A stretch of DNA of 63,325 bases, the filler included, from Perkinsus chesapeaki ATCC PRA-425 (taxonomy: Eukaryota; Protista; Perkinsozoa): NCBI GenBank assembly GCA_013115145.1. It is 4 parts of 4 records of this genome, joined end to end, with 100 filler letters (N's around TTAATTAATTAA, not from the genome) between each part and the next. Parts side by side here need not be neighbours in the genome. Positions count along the whole stretch, not along the records: positions 42,729 to 47,110 come from JAAPAO010001271.1; 3 more parts are not named here. One strand, written 5' to 3'. Both the position numbers and the translations under genes were made by a program. The first letter of the stretch is position 1. Every line of letters begins with the position of its first letter. This document shows positions 1-47,110 of this stretch, one piece after another. The notes under the pieces were generated by a model. It was not told the origin of the DNA. It was given only the letters and a program-made list of their open reading frames with translations, and made no database searches.

Positions 1-2862
1 TATTCACTTCACAGAATTTATCATCATTATTTATATCAGTCCAAATTATTCCTCTTTCCTTCATGTCGAAATCACCAATTAGAATTCTTCTCTCTTTAGA
101 ATCATCCATTATTCCACATTCTTTAGCAATTGATACTCCAGTTAGTACATTATCACCAGTACACATAACACTACGTACAGCACCCGCAGTCAATGCTTTG
201 ATGGCAGCTGGAGAATCTGGTTTCATCTCATTACGGAAAAGTAAAAGACCACACATTGATAGACCAGATTCCAACGACTCTCTTCTAGTCGATATAATAT
301 CCTCATCAGAGAGAGAGTTGTCCAACGTTTTACTGGCCATCGCCAAAGTATAGAAATTATCAGATGCGCAACTCTCGGTGACTTTAACATAATCAACAGG
401 GATGGTCGTATTATGAGAAATCGCTGCAATGCGTTCATAAGATCCCTTAACGATAACGATCGCCTCACCAGTTGATAAATCTCGGACAACTGATCCAGAT
501 GTCATTCTATGATGATCAAAATCAAGCTTTTTCAGAATCTTCAATTTATGGTCACCATTCGGAGAAGTGATAATATTTCCAATTTCATCACCTTCTGTAT
601 TTGGTAAAGACCAACCAGTATTACGGAACATTGTCACTTCAACATTATTACCAACCAAAGTTCCATCACGTAGACTTGTTACGGTATGACAACATGCCAG
701 ACCATATTGCATCCTTAATGGCACCTCAGATCTGATCAAGCTCTCATTGGTTTTATCCAAGGTAGAAGCGTCAGGCTTGAACTGCACCCTCTTCATGAAC
801 GCCTTCTCCGAGAGGTCCACAGGGACCACCGCGGCAAAGTCCATACCGTCCTTAGTGATGGTACCAGTCTTATCGAACACCATGGTAGAGACTTTGCCAG
901 CTACCGGGATTCTACCCGGCTGGAGACAGGATATCTTATCATGACGTTCCAACCTATAAGCCGCTACTGACTGACCCATAACGATCGACACTGGAAGCAT
1001 GGGGTTCATCGCTTGCGCTATGGTGCACAAGATTTGGAGCGTGGTAACGACCCAGGACCCTAGGTTGGTCAAGGTGAGGTATAGAATTATAATGAGAATG
1101 GCATAGAGACCAAGTATACCGTAAATGATAGGTAGCTGGTCCGTGTACTTGAACCTGCAAGTATATGCTTTACGATGCCAGCCGAAAACTGTACGCTCAG
1201 ACGCGCTGAGCGTCGAAGAGCTGCTAAGGAACTCTCAGCCACGGCTGAGAGTTGCCCTGCATACCATACACCGGCAAGTGGTGTGTGGCGTCGGGTATGT
1301 CGCGGAATTTCACGCTCTCCCGTTGTTTCTCACCTGACGGACTGCGGGAAGAGGACCATACGAATCAGCTGTCCCTTGGCCGTAAGAGCTCCAATACCTG
1401 TCGCGAGAAGTACGGCACGCCCTTGATAAGGGCCGGTTGATTGCATACAGTGTGTACCTTGAACAGATCTGAATGGTAGGAAAATGTCCCACCGCTTACC
1501 TGCATAGGCGGTGTTCTTCTTGGTTACTTCCGCACCTTTAATATCTTCAACTGGAAACTTTTGTATAGGCATAGGTTCACCAGTAAGCATTGATTCATTA
1601 ACAATAATTGAACCATCAACAATTACACCATCGCATGGTAATGGTTCACCTTCCTCTACTCGTAATAAATCACCAAGTACAACATCATGGGATCCAATCT
1701 CAATCCATTTACCACATCTTAATACATTTACACGACTCTCTAACTTTGCCATATCAGCTATCTTCTTTTGCCCTCTTCTAACAATAAATAATGCACGGTA
1801 CACTCCAGCGATGAGCGTCATTCCCAACCATATAACGCCGATATTCCAAGTGGTAAACACTATGTACGACCACGCCGCAATCGACTGCAGCACATACAAG
1901 ATATCACTGAACTCCACCGCAAGGCTCTCAATAATACCCGGTACACGAACTCGGATCTCATTAGGGCCGGCTTCCTCAAGGGCGAGCGCCGCGGCGTCAT
2001 CTGTCAGGCCACCGTCCTTCAATCTCTGGTGGATCTCAGTAGAAGTCATCTCAGCTGTCCCTACTGGCCGATACCGCTCTTCCTCCTCATCGAGAACATA
2101 CCGTACACATGTATACTCGTAGCACTTCACACCTAGCATTTCATCATACATAACCGGGACCATTGTTTTACGAGTGGCACTTCTGAACCGGGCGCGAAAT
2201 CTGTCCCACATAAAGAACAGGCGGCGACCAGAGCTCGGGATGTCCTCCTCGGACGCCATGCCAGGATCGATCATATCTTTGGAATCTTCAGCCAACGGCA
2301 CCGTCTCCTCGATGACGACATGAGTTGCATCTGGCAAGTGGGGGACGGGCAGCATGAACAAGGTAACCAGCGAGTGATAGAAGGTGGACAGACTTGCGGC
2401 CAAAATGTGGAAGACCACCATCGAGTACATACACGGTATCACAACACCATCCCAGGTGGTGTTCCAAGAGACGAGGAGCTGGGGAAAGTAGGAAAATGTG
2501 CAGAACACGACAATACCAGCATAGGCAAGAACGAGCAGCCCCATCCAAGAGTAGAGCAAGGCACTTCCAAAGAAGGTTTTGCTGTACCCTGTTTGCAAAA
2601 AGAGGCGCTCAACCTCATCAGGGCTGTGAAATGACAGACGACGAGAGCCTGTGGATTTCATGCGCGCACGGTGATCGGCACGATTGATGATAGCCGACCG
2701 GTAGGAGAAGAATGCAGCTGTTATGAGGAGTAAGCCGCAAAGGACACAAGTCCAGATTGTGGCGGCAGTTGCTCCAAAATCCATATTATGTATAAATGAA
2801 TAGACACTGTAATAGCCAATACTTCCGGCGGCAAGCGCGAATTTTCCACTTCCACAAAGCAT
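1..2862 (-). CDS. P5B-type ATPase (ATP13A-like cation/polyamine transporter), copy 1, 3'-truncated by the window edge
   Basis: Exons 2862-1500, 1457-1334, 1154-<1. GT-AG introns 1499-1458 (42 nt, in frame, read through by the ORF track) and 1333-1155. Motifs ESMLTGEP, MNPMLP (TM4), DKTGT (860-874), KGSYE and MCTGDN. The last exon is open to position 1. Confidence 0.93.
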
Positions 2863-3646
2863 TTGCGAAGATGCAGGTCCCTCTCTCTAGAAGGTAAAAT
2901 GCACTTACTGAATTCTAGCCACCAAGGCGATTGGCGGTTATCCGAAGGAAACGCGCTACGCCTTCCCTCGGGAAGATGCGGTGTACGACTTGGGGGGCAC
3001 TGTGATACTACCAATGCTACCGATACTAGTTCGACGATAAATGATAAATTATTAATAATAGTTAAGTATGATATATGGGGATACAGGAGTTATGATATGC
3101 TATTGCATCAGTCCAGTGCTAACGTTCATTTCGCGGGTATCGGTCCCTGATCCCCAAGCAGCTTCTACAGAGCTACACGGCGGCTTCCAATACTATGATT
3201 CATACAACATTCAAAGCGATTGATCCAGGCAACGACAGCGATCAATGATTCCCATCACGGTGATACAGTTTCCATTGACCTAGGTAATACCGCAAAGTCC
3301 CTCTCTACCAAGCACATTTAACGTAACTTAACTCGATACTGGTTATGTTACTGAATATATTACTGTGTGTTCCACGTACAACGTTGTCTGAAGAATATTA
3401 TGGTAAAGACACGAGAAGACGGGAGAGTAACAGTGACCCTCCGGGAAGCAGAATCTCTAACAACAACGCTTACCGAAAAGGTCGAATAAACAGATAAGAC
3501 GACACTAACGAGAGGGAGTCGGATTAAGTACTTCAACGATATCCATTCCGACCTCTAGTGTCATAAAAAAGCGTGCTAAACCCCCTTAAAGAGTTGCACG
3601 AAAAAAGCCCAGCAATGCTTAGCAAGAGAAAGTCGATCATTTCAAA

Positions 3647-6600
3647 CTAATCGCTGCGAGAGTCTTCAGACTTGTCATCGAGATGAAGTTCTCTTTCATC
3701 TCGTCGACGCAATTGAAGCTTCCTCAAATACGCTGAAACCGGTCCGAGGAGACCAAACTGCACAAAGATGTGTTGTAGCAGTATATATCCAACCAGCACC
3801 CAGGTCATCGCCAATCGATAGCTCCGAGGGTAAGCATTATTGGGGCCATCATAACCAAGAGTAGAGATCTCGGGCGAAGTCCAAGGGTACTTCTCAATGG
3901 CGATTTCAGAACCGGGACCGTGAGGCCTGCAATCATAAGCCTTATCGGGGATCCAGTCATTCATCTCTGGAGTTGATAACTGATAAGTTCGGACTTGAGG
4001 CCCGAGGAAGCAACCGCCAATGTCGCCGACAGAGTAGTCAGAGATGAAGGGGATGTCCTTGGTCTCGAGCGACGAACCGGTATCGCAGTTGACACGGTAG
4101 ACACACGGGAAATCACTGGGCTCCTCCCACAAGAGACAGAATATCATAACCAGGAAGCAAGCATAGAGAATGTTGATGGCCCAGTTGAACAAGATATTCT
4201 TTCTGAAGTGTCCGCCATAGGTGGCCACGTAAGCTTGCGTAACCAACACTGTGAAGAGCATGAACACTTGGGGAGGAGCGTCGTAATTATCACCCTTCTT
4301 CATCCAGTCCTTAGGAGGGATGTCGATGTCGAGTGTGTTAACGTACTGATACCAGCTAGAATTTGCTGGAGACCAGAGAACAGCGTAAGTGATGATTTGG
4401 AAGACATAGTAGCTGACGATAGGTACCGCACAGGCTAGGATTGTCCTCCAGCCCAACAGTGATGCGGTTGGGCGGAAATTAGCCAACTTCTTGGTTGGTC
4501 CGGAAAGTGTCATCGTCCACACCATGATGACACCAATCATGATATCCATAGTCAACCAGACCCATTCGCCGACGTTGATGTTGCCGATGATGGTACCGGA
4601 AAGTCTGATGCAGGTGAGAACGAAACCGTAAACAATAAAGAAGGAGTAGGTGGCAAGCTGGGTGGTGAGACAGGCATGACCTTCACGTATCATATCAACA
4701 ACTGTAAATAATGATCTACCATCACGACCAGAACTGAAGGGTGATACCATAGATGCTTCAGCATCAGATAATGCCATACCAGCATGAGCAGCACGTAATG
4801 CACCACAATCATTACCACCATCACCACACATACCGACAACTAATTTATGGGATTGAAGATATTTTGTAACATTAACTTTATCTTCTGGTTTCATACGAGC
4901 AAACACATAAATATCCTCCCAAATAAGCTCTAACTTCTCTCTATGTGAATGCAAGTGTCTCCATGCACCTTGCGTCACAGCCAGCTGATCCACACCAGGA
5001 ACAGGAATGCAACCCTGCTCGCCAGTATCAGAGTCAGACCACACAACATCATCAGTCTCCCTGCTGAGGTCGCCAATGAGGATCCTACCCTCCTTAGCGT
5101 CACCATCAAGGATATTGCATTGCTTTGCAATAGCCACACCAGTAAGCACGTTATCGCCTGTGCACACAACACTCCTCACTCCTCCGTCCTTCAACGCTTG
5201 AATAGCAGCTGGGGAATCGTGCTTCATTTCGTTCTTGAACAAAAGTAAGCCCAACATTCTCAGACCGTCCTCAAGCTTGTCCCTGCTGGTAGCAATAACC
5301 TCCTGGTCGGTGATCGAGCTCGGCAGAGTCTTCACCGCCATGGCGAGAGTGTAGAAGTTGTCAGCAGCGCAACGCTCAGAAACCGCAACAAAATCGCTCG
5401 GAATCGACTCTTTCACAGATAGGGCGTTGATGCGCTCGTAGGAGCCCTTGACGATAACCATAACCTCGTTGGTATCCAAATCGCGGACGACCGCACCAGA
5501 GGTCATCCTCTTATGGTCGAAGTCTAAAGCCTTCACAATTTCCAACTTGTGAGGAGCCACACCAGCAGGGGACTTAATTACGCTACTGCCCGAGTCAGGG
5601 TCGGGCAGAGACCAACCAGTAGAAGTGAGCATGGCAACATCGACGTGGTTGCCTACGAGACTACCATCACGGAGAGAGGTAACAGTGTGGCATGAGGCCA
5701 GACCGTACTGCATGATCAAAGGCACCTTCTCCGCGACAATGTGATTGTTAGTTTGATCTCCAGCAGGAAGATCATTGTCAAAAGTGACTCTCGAGAGGAA
5801 CTGACCGGTCGACAGATCAACAGGGACCACCGCGGCAAAGTCCATACCATCCTTAGTGATGGTACCAGTCTTATCGAACACCATGGTAGAGATCTTTCCG
5901 GCAACTGGGATTCTACCCGGCTGAAGACATGATATCTTCTCCTTTCGTTCGAGCCTCTTCGAGGCAACCGACTGACCCATGACCATAGAAACAGGCAACA
6001 TAGGATTCATAGACTGCGCGATTGTATTCAAAATCTGCAGAAGTGTGACGATCCAGGAACCGAGATCGGTGAGAGTGGCGTAGAGGATAGTGATAAGCAT
6101 AGCATAACAGAACATGATGGTGTATATAATAGGAAGCTGATCGTTGTACTTAAACCTGAGGGACGGAAAAATAATCATACCGAATTTCCGTCAAATCGCG
6201 TCGTTATACGATACTCTTTTATATATATATTAAACATACTAGAGGAACCTTACGAGGTTGAAGATGCGAAGGATCATTGTATAGAGAATTAAAGTAAAAG
6301 TGATACCAAACTTTCGATAACAATATGAGATAATAGCATGAGGCAATGAAGAGAACGTATCGAATGATATACAGAAGAGCGATAATTGAATAATAGCTTA
6401 CCTGACCGATTGGGGGAACAGGACCATACGGACAAGTTGCCCCTTGCTGGTTAGAGCACCAACGGCAGTACAGAGCAGAACCGCCTTACCATCATGAGAG
6501 CCAGTTGACTGCATACAGATAGTACCTACAACGATATATATAAAGAGAGCGTAAGAGACATAAAAATGGCTTCAATAACATCTCATTTTATAAATAAATT

Positions 6601-8003
6601 TCCCAAGACGGAACAAGGAAATATATGAAAACAGTTAAGACTAGGAAGACACAATTTTGATGTTGCTGCTGGAGTTTACCAAAGCCTTTACCCCCGAGCC
6701 TCTTACCAGCATAAGCTCTGTTCTTCTGTCCAACACTGGCACCTTGAACGTCTTCAAGAGGGAACTTCTGAATGGGCATTGGCTCGCCGGTCAGCATAGA
6801 CTCGTTAACAATAACGGTGCCACTGACGACAATGCCATCGCACGGCAGAGGATCTTGCTCTTCGACACGGACAAGGTCACCGAGCACCACATCGGACGAT
6901 CCGACTTCAACCCACTCGCCACCACGAAGAACGTGAACGCGAGTTTGCAGTTCAGCCATCTTTGCGATCTTTTTCTGGCCAACACGGACGATGAACAAAG
7001 CGCGAATGACGCCAGCGCCGAGCATCATACCAAGCCAGATGATACCGATATTCCACGTAGAGAAGGCGACATACGACCAGGCACCAATAGACTGGAATAC
7101 ATAGATAACGTCGCAGAACTCCACCAGGATGCTCTCGAAGATTCCAGGAACTCTGACCTTGATGGCATTGGGACCCGTGATCTTCTCCATCTTAGTGGCT
7201 TCCTCCATAGTAAGACCACCCGCCTTCAAGAGAGCATGTGCCTCGTCAGCGGTCTTCTCTATAGTCCCCACAGGCCTGAACCGATCGCTCTCCTCGTCGT
7301 AGATATACCGAACGCAAGTATATTCAAAGCAGCGATTGCCGGTCTCCTTGTCAATCTGGACAGGTACCAGTGTAGTGCAGGATGCTTGCTTATACTTGTT
7401 CTTCATGTTATCCCAGACGTCGAGGATCTGGCGTATAAAGCTGGGAATAGCTTCATCATCGGTCATGCCGGGGTCCACCATTTCACTTTCGTCGATAGCA
7501 TCAACCTCCTCCTCAATAAGGACATGAGAGGCGTTCTTCATGCTGGCTTCGGGGAGCATAAAGTTCACCCGCATGACGTGGAAGAACTTTATCATTATAG
7601 CAGCCAACACATGGAAGAGCACAAAGACGTAGAGCCAGGGACCCATGACACCATTCCAGTCGGTGCCCCAGCTCGTGAGGACGTCAGCGAAATATGATAT
7701 GATTGCAAAGAATACCATATTAACACCAGAACAGATCAGGACGGCACACCAACCGATCAATAGGAACGCACCGAACCAACATCTTCTATGGCCCGATTGA
7801 ACGAATAGACGCTCTCGCTCATCCGGGCTGTGAAATGTCAACCGCCGCAAGCCAGCGGCGGCTTTTTCTTCGTTTATCTCCGCCTCTTTGGCGAAGAGAC
7901 GCTCAGTGCGAGCCTTTCTGAAGAGGAGAAAGGTTATGGTTGCCAGTATGAGGAACATCAGAACGACGCTCCAAATAACAACAACGGTGACGCCGAAATG
8001 CAT
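3647..8003 (-). CDS. P5B-type ATPase (ATP13A-like), copy 2, complete, 1309 aa
   Basis: Exons 8003-6707, 6525-6402, 6155-3647 (total 3930 nt). Same intron positions and same 124-nt middle exon as copy 1. Motifs TGEP, DKTGT, TGDN, MCGDGGNDCGAL and EASMVSPF; N-terminal and C-terminal TM helices. Confidence 0.95.
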
Positions 8004-8624: not shown

Positions 8625-10212
8625 ATGACAGTCGATTCGGCGAAGGATGGCTCATTTGAGTTCGTAACACTGAAAAGGTAGTAAAATGGGCACTCCAAGG
8701 GCCATCCGGCGAAGGCATTCTCTTTGCCGGATCTGATGCTTATAAATTTGGTAATCAAACATGACAGGAGCTCAACTACGTACTAGCTGGTGTTTTTATA
8801 TAATAATATTTTACATTGGCACTTGACATCAACTCGAAGCTCATCATTGTCGTCCCCAGGAAATATCCAAAGCCGCCGCCTACTATGTTCACAGTTGTTT
8901 GTCGATAAAGGGAAGGAAGTGCTGCAGTGTGGAGTAATTTCGCCCTAGTCCAGATACTACTTTGAGTTTAATATCGTCGAATATCCTTTGTAGTGCGATA
9001 TTTGTGTCAGCTCCGATGGCAAGGAGATTCGACTGGATAAGAGCATCGCGTGTCAAGCTCCCACTATTAAGGCGATTGTCCAAGGTGATGTCTGTTACGA
9101 ATACCAACTTAAACAAAAACCGACCGGAACGTTATCGAGAATTTGTTAATGCGGCAAATTTTGTAGAGAATATATTTCTAGATCAAGTATAGCCTTGGAC
9201 GTTTTCTTTTGAACATTCTTCCTCCAAGTGCATATCGCGTTCACCTGCGGCTATCTGTAGCCGATGACAGCTCCTTCTTGCTCGGTCTGTTACTCAATGA
9301 GGAGAGCAATTGTGCCGGCTGTCCCCGAGGGGAGTTGAGTTCCAGCTGCTTGGTGTAGCAAAGACCCTTTCGGACCATCGGGGGAACCGTCCTTTTGACA
9401 ACTTCATATAAGATATTTCTGGGAAAAAGTGTGAGCAAGAAAGTGTAGTCCTCGCTTCAAGCTAAGCTACGGCGCAACGGATTGCCCGCCTACCGCTCAG
9501 GTCCCGGTAACTTCGCCGAGACTGCGAATGGCATGATAACACTCCCGAGCATTCGCGGAGAGGTGCTCAAGTGTGTCGTCGATTACCTCTATTATCTTCA
9601 TAAATATACCGATTCGGAGGTAGTACAGTTCTCGCATGGAAGCGGCTTTACTAGTACGGAAGATCACTGACTTCGGCCATGTCACCTCTCCTGTTCTACT
9701 TGATCCTTCTGATTGGCCGGTCGGGAGCATGTCGTGCCGGTAAGGTATTAGCACGGTTCTGCCTGGGAGGCCTGCCAGGTCTCGCGCGCCTTTAAAAAGG
9801 CCTGTGAGGTGTTTGAGACCGTCTCCCCTCTCATTGATTCTCTCTCTTCACCTTCTCCGGACATCTTCCGAAAATTCGCGTTACTGTCTCGTAACAGTGT
9901 ACCACTGTCAGTGATGTCTACACTTCGAGTTACAGTGTCAGAAAGTTGTTGACCGCCAAGCGTTTGGGCGAGCCGACGCCTCCTTCACTTGGCTCATCCG
10001 GTCTCCTTCTTCAATCCCAACTTTGGAATCTGGAGAATTTCTGTCAGCTTTCGATCATGTATTCAATCATTTCTCATGAGAAATTCCTTCAAGATTATAT
10101 CACAACTCCGTCGATGATTTGTTATTTTCAGGAGCCAATCCCAGACTTTCCCATGGATGAAAGCATCGCGTTGGAGGTACTTCTGGCGGCTAATTATTTG
10201 GGCATAGAGTAG
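8625..10212 (+). CDS. ELOC: Elongin C (Skp1/BTB-fold adaptor), 108 aa
   Basis: Exons 8625-8677, 9011-9084, 9501-9619, 10132-10212 (327 nt, phases consistent): MTVDSAKDGSFEFVTLKSSDGKEIRLDKSIACQAPTIKAIVQGPGNFAETANGMITLPSIRGEVLKCVVDYLYYLHKYTDSEEPIPDFPMDESIALEVLLAANYLGIE. Matches Elongin C hallmarks (SSDG, GPGxF, IPxFP..ALExLxAANxL). Confidence 0.92.
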
Positions 10213-15610: not shown

Positions 15611-17023
15611 CTGCCGAGCATAAGATTCGTGCGGAAAGAGCCACAGGTCATCTCAGTGTAAGTGCCAACGACTGGCAGTGGCCTGCATCAGTGTGGATCT
15701 GTTCAGGCGCAGAAGAGATCATCGCATCTAAAGGAGGGTTAGTGGGACTAATAGATGAGGGTCGTCGCAGTCTCGTTTTCAGTTGAACTGAACGATAGGA
15801 GATACTTGGAAGCTCATGTGGTCCCCGCCCTGGCGAAGGCCGTGCGGCTTTGTGAAGAAGAACTTCTTTCTGCCCCCATGTAAGTGTTGCGGCTGTCGAT
15901 CGTGAATAGACACCACAGCATAGAAAGCCTTTAATGATGGCAATGTGGATGTTCTACAAGTCCGCTCTCTGGGAGCCACGTGAGCGGACCCATCCAAGCA
16001 CATGCTCGCTCGGTCGCGTTTCGCAGCGATTTTCAAGATGCAGCTTCACAGTCGTGCAGATCAATAATCAAGAGTACAACTATCAACTTCTAGACGCTCT
16101 CGCTCATACAGTCGACTATTGCGATGATGTATTTCTTGACAGGTCTAATCAGAGACCCGCTGGCGCTCACCAACAACTAGCATTCATCTCCAGTGTTATG
16201 AAAGGACAAGTCTGAATGATATGCTTGTGCTTCTGTATTATCTCACATGGCCTCGTGAAGTCTCTGTTCGTGTCTATGCATGAGGAGTTGAGTGCATGTG
16301 CTGGCATTAGTTGAACCGCACAAACGAGACCGAGTGGTTGAAGTCACTTTTACCCATAACGCTCCACTAGTATTACTGGATCCCAATATTGGATTTGACA
16401 CCTCACCGTGTTAGGCTAACAATTGGTGTGTATTGCGGGCATGATTAACCGAAGTATAACGAGACCCTACGGAATGCCCGTTTCGCGTGAAAGACGGCCG
16501 TGCTATCACTTAGTAGCTTTTGGGCAGCTGATTTAGGAACGAGGAGGTTCCGGAGTCCAGTGAATTTCGAGCCCTTATGGCTCCTTATCGAGCTTGAACG
16601 AAAATTGCATTGTCTGCGCAAGGCGAATCTGCGCGTGCGTACAGTTTGGGTGCAGAAAAAACTGAGTAAAACACTCGAGCCGGGGATCGAACTTGAGTAT
16701 TGGATCCGAGACAGGTATAGGTCATCGCCGGTGAATGCAAGTACTCTAGGATAGCAGTAGGGCGTTTTCACTTGTGTGAAATGTTTTTTCCACTTTCTTA
16801 TCTTCTTGGACTGGTATCGAACACTCTGTGAGTTGTACTATATCTGGGGTAAAGAGTGAAAAACCGAGGAAAAGGGGGTACCAAAAACAAAGGAACAAAG
16901 GTTACAATCCCAACCCCTCCGTGGGAAAAATACCCCTTCGATTGATGCGGGTGCGGAATCCCAATCCTCGCCTAGAAAAGCACGTCTCCTTAGAAATTTA
17001 TAATTTCTCCTTTTCTGGCTCCA

Positions 17024-42728: not shown

Positions 42729-42811
42729 TCACCAATCTGAGAGTAATCCGCAGCTGCTGCGGCTGCCTGAAACGGCCTAGCGGAGCGACGCGATCGCTAC
42801 AGCTACTCCCG

Positions 42812-42826
42812 GCCCTCTGGCTCAAG
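42812..42826 (+). other. Spliced-leader-like relic GCCCTCTGGCTCAAG in the LINE 5' region
   Basis: Matches 14 of the last 15 nt of the 21-nt perkinsid SL as recalled (ACCGTAGCCATCTGGCTCAAG), ending 34 nt before the ORF1 ATG. Confidence 0.6.
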
Positions 42827-42860
42827 TTGTTTATTCCCTAAATCTTCACTCTCCCTTAAC

Positions 42861-44072
42861 ATGCCCCCCATTCCTCCCCCGTCGCGTCAGCTGCGCTCTC
42901 AGAACAGATCAGCGGCCAAGTCATCAGACAGAGCAGCCTCCGGATCCCAATCGGCGAATTCAAGTTCGGCAAATACTCCCCATCCCGCTGGCAGAGGTAT
43001 CGACTGGGCCGAGATCACTGACCTCGACGAGCAACTTGAGTCCTCTCGGACTCCTATGGACTGGGCAGAGACTATCACCAATGTGGTGAATGGCGTCCTG
43101 GCCCAGGAAGGTAAATATTTCAGCCTTGCCAAAGCTGATATCATTCTGAAAGCTATCGAATCTATGAAAACTGGTTATATTCGTATTCTGGAACAGAATA
43201 TCTCCTTGAAGGACAAACTTCTCAGCAAGGCCAGTGAGACACCTCCTGTGGTGAGCTACAGGGGTGCCCTCCTTTCGGGCATCCCGCACACCTCAAGGCT
43301 CCCACCCCCGAGCAAGACCATTGTTGTTAAGCCTACATCACTACCTGACGATCCGATTGGTAGAAAGAGCACAATACTAAATCTTCAGAAGACCCTTGGT
43401 GCTACCGTCAGAGATAAGGCAATTGTCGTGGACACTATAACTACTAGAAGAGGTGATGTTGCTATCAAAGTTCCTGAGAATACTGACACTGATGAAATTA
43501 TTAGCACTATTAATAGTGCTATTCCATCTGGCAAAGCCGCAGTGGCCAACAAACTACAACCTGAGGTCATGATATCGCTGGCTGGCACTTCTGACATTAC
43601 GCCCGACAAAATACTGTCCGATGTCCCCCTCTACATGCCTGGTACCGACACCCAGAACTGGAAGATCATCAGGGCTAACAGCAAGATGGTCACGGTCAGA
43701 ATGCCTTGTCGCGATCGCGACCGCATCATGAAAGAAGGCTTTATTGTGGTCGATACTCTCAGGCTGAGGTGCAGAGACGTTATTGGCATCAGAGCTTGCT
43801 TTAGTTGCGGCTCCTGCCATGGTCAAGCAGCTCCATGCAGGGAGAAGAAGTCGTGCCTGACATGTGGCGGTCAACACGAGATGCGGGACTGCCCTAACAG
43901 GGAATTACCGCTTGATCAGAGACGCTGCTCTCTCTGTGGTGGCTCTGGCCACAACTATCATGAGGGCCCTCTCTGTAGAGTCAAGCTGAGTCTTATGCGT
44001 GACAAATATGTCCGCACTGAGAGAACAATTGGGGGACCTCCTTATAATGGCCCTCACGCTGACGAAATATGA
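42861..44072 (+). CDS. LINE ORF1, gag-like nucleic-acid-binding protein with three zinc-knuckle-like motifs
   Basis: 403 aa; CFSCGSCHGQAAPC, CLTCGGQHEMRDC and CSLCGGSGHNYHEGPLC. Confidence 0.9.
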   Translation: MPPIPPPSRQLRSQNRSAAKSSDRAASGSQSANSSSANTPHPAGRGIDWAEITDLDEQLESSRTPMDWAETITNVVNGVLAQEGKYFSLAKADIILKAIESMKTGYIRILEQNISLKDKLLSKASETPPVVSYRGALLSGIPHTSRLPPPSKTIVVKPTSLPDDPIGRKSTILNLQKTLGATVRDKAIVVDTITTRRGDVAIKVPENTDTDEIISTINSAIPSGKAAVANKLQPEVMISLAGTSDITPDKILSDVPLYMPGTDTQNWKIIRANSKMVTVRMPCRDRDRIMKEGFIVVDTLRLRCRDVIGIRACFSCGSCHGQAAPCREKKSCLTCGGQHEMRDCPNRELPLDQRRCSLCGGSGHNYHEGPLCRVKLSLMRDKYVRTERTIGGPPYNGPHADEI

Positions 44073-47000
44073 TCTCATCGGACATCAACACCAATGGCGC
44101 TGTACTTAACTTTATTCAAGCTAATGTCAGTAAATCTTCTACTGTCCTATATGATATCTGTCACTCCTCTTCTTTTGATATCTTTCTCTGCCAAGAGCCT
44201 CCGGCGAAGTTTTTCCTTAGGGGTTTCAAAACCTTGTCTGTGAAACCACCTACCAATACATGTATCATTATTTCCGACCATCTGTCTGATAAGTTTGCTC
44301 TCAACACTGTGCTCTCAACTGACAATATTACGATCATCTCGTCTAAGTTTTATAATTTTATAAGTTTCTATAACCCGCCCTCTCGTGGCAACTGCTCTCA
44401 TCTCGACTGTCTGCTACCTTTCCTCACTGATAGTACTGGTTGTCTACTAGGAGGCGACACTAATGGTTATAGTCATGTATGGGGTATATACCCACCTAAC
44501 CTATCCTCTCGCAATGAGGTGGCCTATAGATATGGACGGGAAATGGAATCCCTAGTACTATCCACTGGTCTTACCTGCTACAACAATACGGATGACATCC
44601 AACCCACCTATCATCACGCGGCCTCCACTGCCACGGAAAGACGTTCTACTATCGACGCTACCTTTGGGACTAATGATATGCTGGTCACCAACTGGCGTGT
44701 CGCTACCGACCTCTCGCCCTATGGTTCTGATCATTACCCGATCCTCTTCTCTCTATCCTCACAGGTCACCATGAATGAACCACATCATCAACACGAGCTC
44801 AGCAACTTCTGTCACTCCAAGATCTGTTGGACGACCTTCACTAACCATATCAACAGCTGTGAGGCGGCTTTCTTGGAGCGAGAAGCTTTTGATCCCTCCG
44901 ACCATATTGATGTGCTAGAGAGGAGGATCTCGGGGGTTATCCAGCAGGCTGCGAGGGCCAGTTGCCCGTCGCGTGACCCGAATGCCACTCCCCGGCCTGT
45001 CAATTCGTGGTGGGACAACGACTTGAAGGATGCCAGAGCCTCACTTGCTCGCACAAGAAGGCTACATGGACACACGTCTGCCAATTACAGGGAGGAGCGT
45101 CTGAAATACCGGAGACTTATTGATGAGAAAAAGTCATCCAGTTTCGTTCGCTTCGCCTCTACCATAGAGGATGATCCGAACTTCTTGAACAAGGTCACCA
45201 GGGAACCAGTACTGCCCCCTACTACTATCATCGGTTATCCTACTGTGGAAGGCACGGTTTCGGCCCTGGCGGATAAATATCTCGGCTCCACCTCTTACGA
45301 CCCGGCCATTGTTGTCTCGTCGTCTGTTGAAGCTGGCTCAATCTCCCCACACGACAATTTGCTGGCGGACTCTCACCCCGACTTTGCGGTCTCGCTGGTC
45401 AAGGCCGAAATCTTATCCAAGCAGAAATCTACGACTCCCGGTTCGTGTGGTATCCGCTGGGATCATCTGGTCTACTGTCCGGACTGGCTCGTAAGAGAGC
45501 TCTGCCGCCTCTTCCAGCTATCTCTGAGTAAGGGTTTCGTCCCAACACATTGGCGTTCCTCGACCGTTATCTACATACCCAAGCCCAGTGGTTACGGTAC
45601 GATTAAGGGCGTAAGACCTATTACCCTCTCATGCACCCTATGCAAGCTGATGGAAGCTATGATCATCCTACGTCTATCTGCGGCCATCGACCAGGTGCTG
45701 GCGTCTCGAGAGCAGTATGCCTACCTTCCTGGACGTTCATCGGTGTCCTTGGTAAAAGACTTGCTGCACCACGTCCAAGTGGGCTTCACTGGGAAAATAG
45801 TCAAGAAGAAGCCTCCCTGGGCTATTGCTGGACTGGACCTGAGTAATGCTTTCGGTTCTATTCCCCATGACAAACTCATTACTGCCATCGCGGCACTCGG
45901 TGTGCCTTCTACTGAGCAGCACTGGATCCAAAGCTGGCTGGCTCCACGGCGCAACACCAACAGATACCTCGGCATTAGTTCCTCCAGGTTGGCGGATTCT
46001 AACGTGGGCCTCTCCCAGGGCAGTGTATTGTCACCTATTCTCTTTGTGCTCTTCATGCACTACTGGTTAAATCATATCACCGCTCAGTTGGGTCCCAAGA
46101 AGTTTGGTCTCCGCTGGTTTGTCTACGCCGATGATTGCTACATAGCCTTTAAGTTCCGACTGAGAACCAGCAGCGGCATCATGGATCAGGAGATCAACAA
46201 CTTTCTCACTGCATTGACAACCGCACTTGACACGGTCAACCTAAAGCTATCAATGGAGAAGACGGCGGTGCTAACCGGCTATAACTCAACCTGTTTCAGG
46301 TCTAAGTTTATGTCCATACTCGGCATGACCATCTCCAGTAAGCTCAGTTTCTCCCAACACTTGAAGGCGAAGTTGGCGAAATGTCACAACCTCACCATGA
46401 AGATCCTGCGCTTCACTCGGAAGTCCTACGGCATTTCACCTACTGGAGTTCTCCAGCTGGCCCGCTCGGTGTGGTTACCGACCATCAGTTACGGCCTTGA
46501 AGTTTGGGGCGTTTCATTGGTCCACAAATCAACTTGTGGGCTCATTGACTCGGCCTACAGAAGTATTATAAGAATGGCTTATCGCCTTCCGCAGTCCACT
46601 CCGATCAACTTCATCGACATTATGCATGGTGGTCCCTGCCTGTCGGACATCCTTATTGACAAGTTACTGGTCAAGATCCTGCACAAGATGGAAAGCCCAT
46701 CCAGTGGCGACCTACTTCCCGCCCATTTCGGTTGGAACAGATCACTACGGACCAAATGGCGCCACGTTCTGTCCACGAGACTGCCTCAGATGGCTACGAC
46801 TGATCGGTACACCAAAGGTACCAGGCCCCCGCCAGATATCAGAAGGAGAATCCTAGTCGGCAGTCATCCTGAGGCAGGCACCAACTACTGGCGCTGTCTC
46901 GCTGGTAACGGTCTCGACATCTACACAGATGGCTCTCGAGTCACTTCCCAGGGCTCCATTTCGGTCGGTGCTGGATTTGTGGTGGTAGACTGTAATACTG

Positions 47001-47110
47001 AGATCTACCACTATGCTGTAAGGCTGCCTAACCACTCCACTATTTATCAAGCCGAACAGGAGGCTCTCCATCAAGCGGTCAAATTTCTTCGGAGCACCGC
47101 CTACGGTAAC
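44069..47110 (+). CDS. LINE ORF2: AP endonuclease, reverse transcriptase and RNase H (truncated by the gap)
   Basis: APE: CQE, GGDTN, SDHYPI. RT: RPITL, LDLSNAFGSI, GLSQGSVLSP, YADD. RNH: IYTDGS, TIYQAE. Confidence 0.96.

Follow-up and report, generated by a model that had tools for sequence, protein, structure and literature searches.

Spliced-leader remnants at the 5' ends of a Perkinsus LINE group point to mobilisation of trans-spliced RNA

Long interspersed nuclear elements (LINEs) physically joined to spliced-leader (SL) sequence are known from SLACS, CZAR, CRE and NeSL-1, which insert site-specifically into SL RNA genes by means of a restriction-like endonuclease and have the SL as target on both sides. 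Here, we analyse an SL-like motif at the 5' end of the one non-long-terminal-repeat (non-LTR) retrotransposon held by an entire 4,382-bp contig of Perkinsus chesapeaki, at positions 42729–47110 of the window (the whole stretch of DNA analysed, 63,325 nucleotides). This element, hereafter the window copy, and its relatives are likewise LINEs joined to SL sequence; unlike SLACS and its kin, they have an apurinic-type (APE-type) endonuclease and CA/CTA-rich repeat targets, and carry only the 3' part of the SL, on their 5' side. A second comparison is offered by Pr77, the 5'-terminal 'hallmark' of trypanosomatid ingi and L1Tc elements, which acts as an internal promoter, gives unspliced transcripts and is not SL-derived (PMC1874656, PMC8190864). 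Both are short conserved sequences at the extreme 5' end of LINEs in a trans-splicing organism, but the Perkinsus remnant does derive from the SL.

In both dinoflagellates and P. marinus, retrocopies are recognisable by relict SLs; the process was termed 'mRNA recycling' by Slamovits and Keeling 2008 (as described in PMC3229502, PMC6050394, PMC6616646). The LINE remnants resemble these relicts in being genome-encoded, SL-derived sequence directly upstream of the 5' untranslated region (UTR) of a retro-copied unit, and the remnant of the window copy also starts at SL position 8 (CC.); for retrogene relicts a role in expressing the new copy has been proposed. They differ in that the tag sits on an autonomous retrotransposon and not on a trans-copied cellular gene, that it characterises an entire LINE group throughout the genus, and that the remnants are single, 2–14 nt long and mostly do not start at CCA, whereas retrogene relicts often lie in tandem below a newer SL. 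In one study of Symbiodinium, DinoSL-relict genes and reverse transcriptase genes did not overlap (bioRxiv 10.1101/783902); another found 'RNA-dependent DNA replication' enriched among relict-bearing genes. In P. marinus, Zhang et al. 2011 (PMC3101222) described more than 100 intron-less, unexpressed SL-like loci with variable downstream sequence, among them an 'S-like' sequence consisting of SL, short leader and ATG. These loci contain PmaSL1 or PmaSL2 without a downstream intron, as do the LINE 5' ends; many are described as full-length, starting with T and arranged in tandem arrays, features not seen in the LINE copies fetched here, and that paper draws no link from them to retrotransposons. 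Within the limited literature searched, no paper explicitly describes a LINE family whose 5' end is an SL remnant.

The 5' motif of the window copy

Two P. marinus leaders have been published, PmaSL1 (ACCGTAGCCATCTTGGCTCAAG, 22 nt, L-type) and PmaSL2 (ACCGTAGCCATCTGGCTCAAG, 21 nt, S-type; PMC3101222, PMC9399869). PmaSL2 served as reference for the window copy; the S-type exon sequence of P. chesapeaki is not published. An earlier sequence-only reading of the window had taken the 21-mer CTCCCGGCCCTCTGGCTCAAG at 42806–42826, ending 34 nt before the ATG of open reading frame 1 (ORF1), for a relic of the 21-nt perkinsid SL, and had proposed by reference to dinoflagellate retrogenes that the element was mobilised from a trans-spliced RNA. 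The SL sequence used there equals PmaSL2 exactly, the spacing is correct (ATG at 42861), and relict SLs in dinoflagellate retrogenes are indeed established, with further cases noted in P. marinus. The match itself holds as counted, at 15 of 21 positions with the last 11 (42816–42826) exact, but only its last 14 nt are informative: the seven bases 5' of 42813 agree with ACCGTAG at 2 of 7 positions, which is the chance level, and a one-indel alignment of this part (ACTCCCGG against ACCGTAG) was rejected as not significant. The informative part is a 14-nt remnant with a single mismatch (Table 1). It begins at SL position 8 (CCC where the SL has CCA), just past the SL's internal AG, and thus at the same point as published relict SLs, which begin with CCA after that AG (PMC6616646, PMC3229502). 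As to the species' own leaders, both types hybridise with P. chesapeaki RNA, strongly for the L-type probe and more weakly for the S-type, and the authors offer an altered exon base as one reason.

Chance likeness of a pyrimidine-rich leader to the SL deserves practically no weight as an explanation. In the window, the exact 11-mer is found a single time, with 0.10 occurrences expected. Shuffling the whole piece 2000 times produced a match of at least 13/14 once, and 2000 shuffles of the 132-nt leader, where the analytic expectation is 2e-5, produced none; matches of 10–14 nt also recur at this one place in six copies that represent four clades (see below). What speaks for chance is that SL 10-mers also occur away from the leader, at three places in the 177 kb scanned, and that a 12-nt exact match to PmaSL2 positions 3–14 lies antisense within ORF2 of the window copy (CGTAGCCATCTG, 46787–46798, minus strand). 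The first of these counts is itself at the chance level (3.5 expected), so that the leader matches alone exceed chance; the antisense 12-mer, with about 0.01 expected in the window piece and about 0.2 over all scanned loci, is probably fortuitous.

Tandem relics, also considered in the sequence-only reading, were not borne out: upstream of the remnant the window piece holds no second relic, the best match being 8/14. A functional SL RNA gene at this place was considered and rejected, since the first 7 nt of the exon are unmatched and the exon end is followed by TTGTTT instead of the GTA(A/G)ATATCAG of published SL RNA primers (PMC3101222). The upstream region contains a palindrome, CCGCAGC-T-GCTGCGG, and, at 42797–42807, CTACAGCTACT, a stretch similar to the CTA/CAA microsatellite tails seen in this LINE group; a blastn search with the first 100 nt of the window piece against the other fetched loci gave no match. 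The region probably represents target DNA or another copy's 3' end.

Junctions in ten copies from three species

A word search with ORF1 returned one close relative, Pmar_PMAR005623 of P. marinus (57–63% identical; 57% in the word search), and a profile search returned further ORF1 relatives, all of them Perkinsus proteins. Fetching their contigs yielded ten independent copies, including the window copy, from three Perkinsus species (Table 1); ORF1 of the nine relatives is 26–63% identical to that of the window copy. An ORF2 relative from P. olseni, L002, was set aside as uninformative, being without a 5' end. In an ORF1 tree that omits L002, L011 and L012 and in which the pieces of broken copies are linked by X, the copies form four well-supported clades, namely (window copy,(L001,L003)), (L008,L009), (L004,L005) and (L006,L010), with L007 as a long branch; the window copy is sister to L001 and L003 with support 100/100. 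The 5' junctions were compared by hand and by script, as a MAFFT alignment of two 5' regions misplaced the motif.

In 10/10 copies the 3' end of the SL directly adjoins the short, T-rich ORF1 leader, and every SL part ends in ...CAAG. Its length is 14 nt in two copies, 13/14 matching in the window copy, 10 nt in three, 6 nt in two and at most 4 nt in the last two, and the relatives match PmaSL1 at 14/14 and 10/10 positions. The remnant thus begins at SL position 8 in the window copy and at positions 9, 13 or 17 in others. From SL part to ORF1 ATG is 26–51 nt in the eight copies with a placeable ATG (all but L006 and L009). The leader of the window copy is homologous to those of the relatives, with 68–70% identity to L001/L003 and 53–64% to the other clades. 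Within the six copies that keep at least 10 nt, TGGCTCAAG is invariant, while the adjoining leaders are only 43–65% identical between clades. The 'L1-like' primer CCATCTTGGCTCAAGATCTTAGTG (SL plus ATCTTAGTG; PMC3101222) equals the L008 junction over 23 nt.

Homology among the ten copies begins at the SL part. The upstream sequences are unrelated and consist of CA/CTA-rich repeats, minisatellites or hairpin-plus-tail modules, so the comparison of copies agrees with the sequence-only reading in that related full-length copies have no common sequence upstream of the motif. Two short contigs, L009 and L012, have the first base of the remnant as their own first base (CATCTTGG... and TTGG..., respectively), which would be expected if the assembly graph branches where copies cease being alike. 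Target-site duplications (TSDs) are readable only in L004 and L005, both of which keep at most 4 nt of SL, and there the element starts with the AG of AG|TT(T)G, or possibly with CAAG given a CA microhomology. These TSD-defined starts correspond exactly to the SL/body junction of the window copy.

Such flanks bear on the idea that the elements insert site-specifically into SL RNA genes or arrays, in the manner of NeSL, SLACS or CZAR, the SL piece being flanking target DNA. Tandem arrays of SL-like sequences do exist in the P. marinus genome; yet no copy has the 5' half of the SL upstream, the flanking DNA is made up of minisatellites and CA/CTA-rich repeats, the TSDs of L004 and L005 are repeat sequence rather than SL, and the endonuclease is APE-type and not restriction-like. 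We consider this origin highly improbable.

The SL type (TCTGG or TCTTGG) and the SL-to-body junction differ between copies, even inside one clade. The window copy has the S-type TCTGG joined straight to TTG; its sisters L001 and L003 have the L-type TTGG joined to ATTTAGTTG, and hence carry ATTTAG between SL and TTG, the TAG| of which coincides exactly with the junction of the window copy. Remnant lengths of 10 and 14 nt each recur in non-sister clades; as an alternative to inheritance through RNA, equal lengths in sister copies may reflect preferred stopping positions of the reverse transcriptase on the SL. Comparison of the copies shows that the motif derives from the SL, that it lies at the boundary of the element, that it recurs across three species and four ORF1 clades, and that SL type and junction vary.

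Table 1. Features of the window copy (positions of the whole stretch) and of related copies (positions listed under each copy).
Copy	Feature	Position	Strand	Description
Window copy (P. chesapeaki)	Region upstream of remnant	42729..42812	+	84 nt; in common with no related copy
Window copy	SL-derived remnant	42813..42826	+	CCCTCTGGCTCAAG; 13/14 against CCATCTGGCTCAAG, SL positions 8–21 of S-type
Window copy	5' leader	42827..42860	+	34 nt, T/C-rich, between remnant and ORF1 ATG
Window copy	5' junction			Upstream ccc-, SL part TCTGGCTCAAG, leader TTGTTTATTCCC
Window copy	ORF1	42861..44072	+	403 aa, intact; Cys/His zinc-knuckle-like motifs near C-terminus
Window copy	ORF2	44069..47110	+	At least 1014 aa; frame open until contig end
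L001 (P. marinus)	5' junction	7100–7109		aca-, SL part TTGGCTCAAG, leader ATTTAGTTGG
L003 (P. olseni)	5' junction	3296–3305		As L001
L008 (P. olseni)	5' junction	419–432		gtg-, SL part CATCTTGGCTCAAG, leader ATCTTAGTTGATC; 14 nt exact, L-type
L009 (P. chesapeaki)	5' junction	1–14		SL part CATCTTGGCTCAAG from the contig's first base, leader ATTAGTTGATC; 14 nt exact, L-type
L010 (P. olseni; L011 and L012 are the same element)	5' junction	4526–4535 (L010)		cag-, SL part TTGGCTCAAG, leader GTAGTTGAATC; L012 begins at TTGG
L007 (P. marinus)	5' junction	236–241		cga-, CTCAAG, leader GTAGTTGGATTTCC
L006 (P. olseni)	5' junction	345–350		GCCATact-, CTCAAG, leader GTAGTTGATTT
L004 (P. chesapeaki)	5' junction			cca-, CAAG, leader TTTGTTTTATT
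L005 (P. chesapeaki)	5' junction			ccc-, CAAG, leader TTGTTTTATTT
L001	Upstream repeat			(CAACAACTA)n
L004	Upstream repeat			24-nt minisatellite
L005	Upstream repeat			46-nt tandem repeat
L007	Upstream repeat			27-nt repeat
L004	(CAA)n tail	5978–6011		Ends the element
L005	(CAA)n tail	9038–9065		Ends the element
L008	(CAA)n tail	5295–5365		Reaches contig end
L004	TSD	1016–1026 and 6011–6021		CTACGACCACA, 11–12 bp; follows (CAA)n tail; inside minisatellite
L005	TSD	4166–4172 and 9066–9072		CCTCCCA, 7–9 bp; follows (CAA)n tail; inside 46-nt array
L004	Minisatellite around element	26–1026 and 6010–6390		24–27-nt units, ACTACCACTACGACCACATCTTCT and similar
L007	Minisatellite around element	1–237		24–27-nt units, ACTACCACTACGACCACATCTTCT and similar
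L005	Tandem repeat (target)	3961–4172		46-nt unit, 4.6 copies, 100% identical
L003	Palindrome module	3198–3258		Perfect, ~30 bp (ACAGGAGATGCCGTGCTCCC...), then CCAAACCAAAC and CTA/CA-rich tail
L001	Similar palindrome module	16753–16800	−	Then (CTA)n and CAGCTACTAC

Origin of the remnant

We regard it as probable that the motif is a genuine Perkinsus SL remnant at the LINE 5' boundary, and that the RNA of these LINEs is, or repeatedly was, SL trans-spliced and then reverse-transcribed together with its leader. In this reading, SL trans-splicing to an AG within the leader would provide the LINE RNA with its cap; the RNA would then be copied, SL included, by target-primed reverse transcription, which would usually stop before the SL 5' end; and new copies would start with 2–14 nt of the SL 3' end (...CAAG), followed by the T-rich ORF1 leader. 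The core claim of the sequence-only reading, an SL relic at the 5' end of a LINE mobilised from trans-spliced RNA, is therein supported, as far as sequence alone goes, by the SL identity, by homology that starts at the motif and by the TSDs of two relatives. The trans-spliced RNA would be the transposition intermediate. SL capture appears to have occurred more than once, because the window copy has the S-type TCTGG while its sisters have the L-type TTGG, and because its junction lies at the sisters' TAG|, as expected from use of a different acceptor AG.

Several observations weigh against this account. The full 21- or 22-nt SL is present in no copy, and its 5' 7–8 nt never match above chance. 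The window copy is cut in ORF2 before its 3' end and TSD, so its 5' boundary is set by comparison only, with the contig extending 84 nt upstream. Its remnant has a single A-to-C mismatch; if the P. chesapeaki S-type exon had CCCTCTGG, both this mismatch and the weak S-probe signal would be accounted for. On the same side stand the GTAG that follows the remnant in L006, L007 and L010, four letters with which the L-type SL intron also begins, and the equal remnant lengths of sister copies (10 nt in L001/L003, 14 nt in L008/L009, at most 4 nt in L004/L005).

The GTAG, read against primer CTCAAGGTAGATATC, is the sole support for a template switch at the end of reverse transcription, in which the enzyme would pass from the 5' end of the LINE RNA to an SL RNA or SL-capped mRNA, the element RNA itself not being trans-spliced. 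U6-L1 chimeras are known products of such switches. Against it, the SL exon ends exactly at ...CAAG without SL intron behind it in 7/10 copies (the window copy, L001, L003, L008, L009, L004 and L005), a feature that marks a spliced product, as opposed to an SL gene or a template switch onto SL RNA; moreover, the GTAG can be aligned with the TTAG of other leaders, and the jump would have to recur at one place in four clades. Template switching therefore appears very unlikely.

Equal lengths in sisters have a wider bearing. They are explained no less well by a remnant inherited through RNA, with transcription beginning at the first base of the element, than by a new SL acquired every cycle, and they also fit an inherited 5' end transcribed from an internal promoter. 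On these grounds, a single ancient SL capture may be envisaged that was inherited ever since as a 5' UTR or an internal promoter/initiator, with transcripts starting at the element's first base and trans-splicing having no present role. Sisters in different species indeed share identical remnant lengths and junctions (L001/L003, L008/L009, L004/L005), two independent insertions (L004, L005) start at the same base by TSD, and Song, Chen and Chen proposed DinoSL relicts as retrogene promoters (PMC6050394). However, the window copy differs from its sisters at once in SL type, in lacking their six extra leader bases and in having four extra SL-matching bases upstream, so that pure descent would need several exact changes; lengths of 10 and 14 nt recur in non-sister clades; and an SL part that stays invariant beside a leader diverged to 43–65% identity would need strong selection. 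We judge a single ancient capture unlikely, although less so than template switching, and favour repeated capture from trans-spliced RNA.

If LINE RNA does receive the SL, the remnant may have a further function. The terminal AG of the window remnant could act as a trans-splice acceptor, and in general the retained AG together with the pyrimidine-rich remnant may let read-through transcripts of a new copy be trans-spliced again. A more far-reaching model, which we hold only tentatively, is that this LINE group has no internal promoter: it would be transcribed by read-through from neighbouring DNA, often the tail of another copy or a repeat, and the remnant would serve as trans-splice acceptor, each round regenerating a capped, translatable RNA of defined 5' end as transposition template. 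Compatible with promoter independence and AG re-use, both put forward in the sequence-only reading, are the ...CAAG kept by 10/10 copies and the pyrimidine-rich character of the remnant.

A metagenome scan for TTGGCTCAAGAT(0-3)TAGTTG gave 101 matches, close to the chance prediction, none of which encodes ORF1. Three of the metagenome contigs (L014, L034, L087) start with (T)TTGGCTCAAG, followed by AT..TAGTTG, and encode no ORF1 relative; they look like unrelated SL-capped dinoflagellate transcripts caught by chance.

Coding capacity, insertion sites and implications

The window copy is an apparently intact APE-type LINE, with both reading frames open as far as the contig extends; the annotated protein FOL47_001200, located on a 4,382-bp contig, matches at 100% identity. 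A Pfam search of ORF1 matched no family. ORF2 combines an apurinic-type endonuclease (residues 96–225; PF14529, Exo_endo_phos_2, E = 1.6e-12) with a reverse transcriptase (residues 503–755; PF00078, E = 1.3e-31), the pair that identifies the element as a LINE of this type; the C-terminal stretch behind the latter is cut off by the contig end, and Pfam matches to RNase H are found in relatives L004 and L008. The ORF1 stop and ORF2 start overlap in ATGA (44069–44072), an arrangement typical of termination-reinitiation coupling in LINEs. Exact look-up of the ORF1 protein returned no identical record. The public gene model P0002 (1208 aa) joins ORF1 and ORF2 via a predicted intron, and this fusion is most likely an annotation artefact.

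Before the (CAA)n tails lie hairpins and a conserved ...CGGAC(G)TT(T)AAAC(T)CC motif, and no poly(A) end is present; the 3' ends sought in L001 and L003 showed no clear tail. The CA/CTA-rich insertion sites suggest that the tail primes on the target, and insertion into tail-like repeats is what would be expected when a microsatellite tail does so; these LINEs appear to insert into tail-like repeats and into each other's tails. The long minisatellites around L004 and L007 would encode Thr/Ser-rich, mucin-like repeats, and a public model, P0005 (660 aa), that combines minisatellite repeat and ORF1 in one protein is probably a chimera of target and element. The 46-nt unit that serves as target in L005 includes CCCAG|GGTATAT, which is splice-donor-like, with no link to SL RNA genes seen. 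The palindrome module in L003 lies right upstream of the SL-bearing LINE start, and the similar module in L001 extends it from P. olseni to P. marinus; it probably represents the 3' end of some other retroelement family, and its tail is also resembled by the CTACAGCTACT of the window copy.

Which retroelement copied the relict-SL genes of dinoflagellates and Perkinsus has, to our knowledge, never been established. The present comparison supports the view that an SL remnant is a genus-wide feature of one LINE group, found in three Perkinsus species, and extends the known relict-SL phenomenon: an autonomous LINE group bears, at its own 5' end, the same mark as retroposed cellular genes. LINE RNA in Perkinsus therefore probably enters the SL trans-splicing pathway, and these LINEs become obvious candidate sources of the reverse transcriptase for 'mRNA recycling'. 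Some, at least, of the more than 100 intron-less SL-like loci of P. marinus are probably LINE 5' ends. An SL suffix followed by a T-rich leader and ATG provides a sequence tag for finding full-length, possibly active elements. The findings also offer a model of how a LINE could manage without an internal promoter, which is directly testable since P. marinus is transfectable. If true, this promoter-less life cycle would represent an SL-dependent answer to the 5'-truncation and promoter problem of LINEs, and may supply the machinery for retrogene 'recycling' in Perkinsozoa and dinoflagellates.
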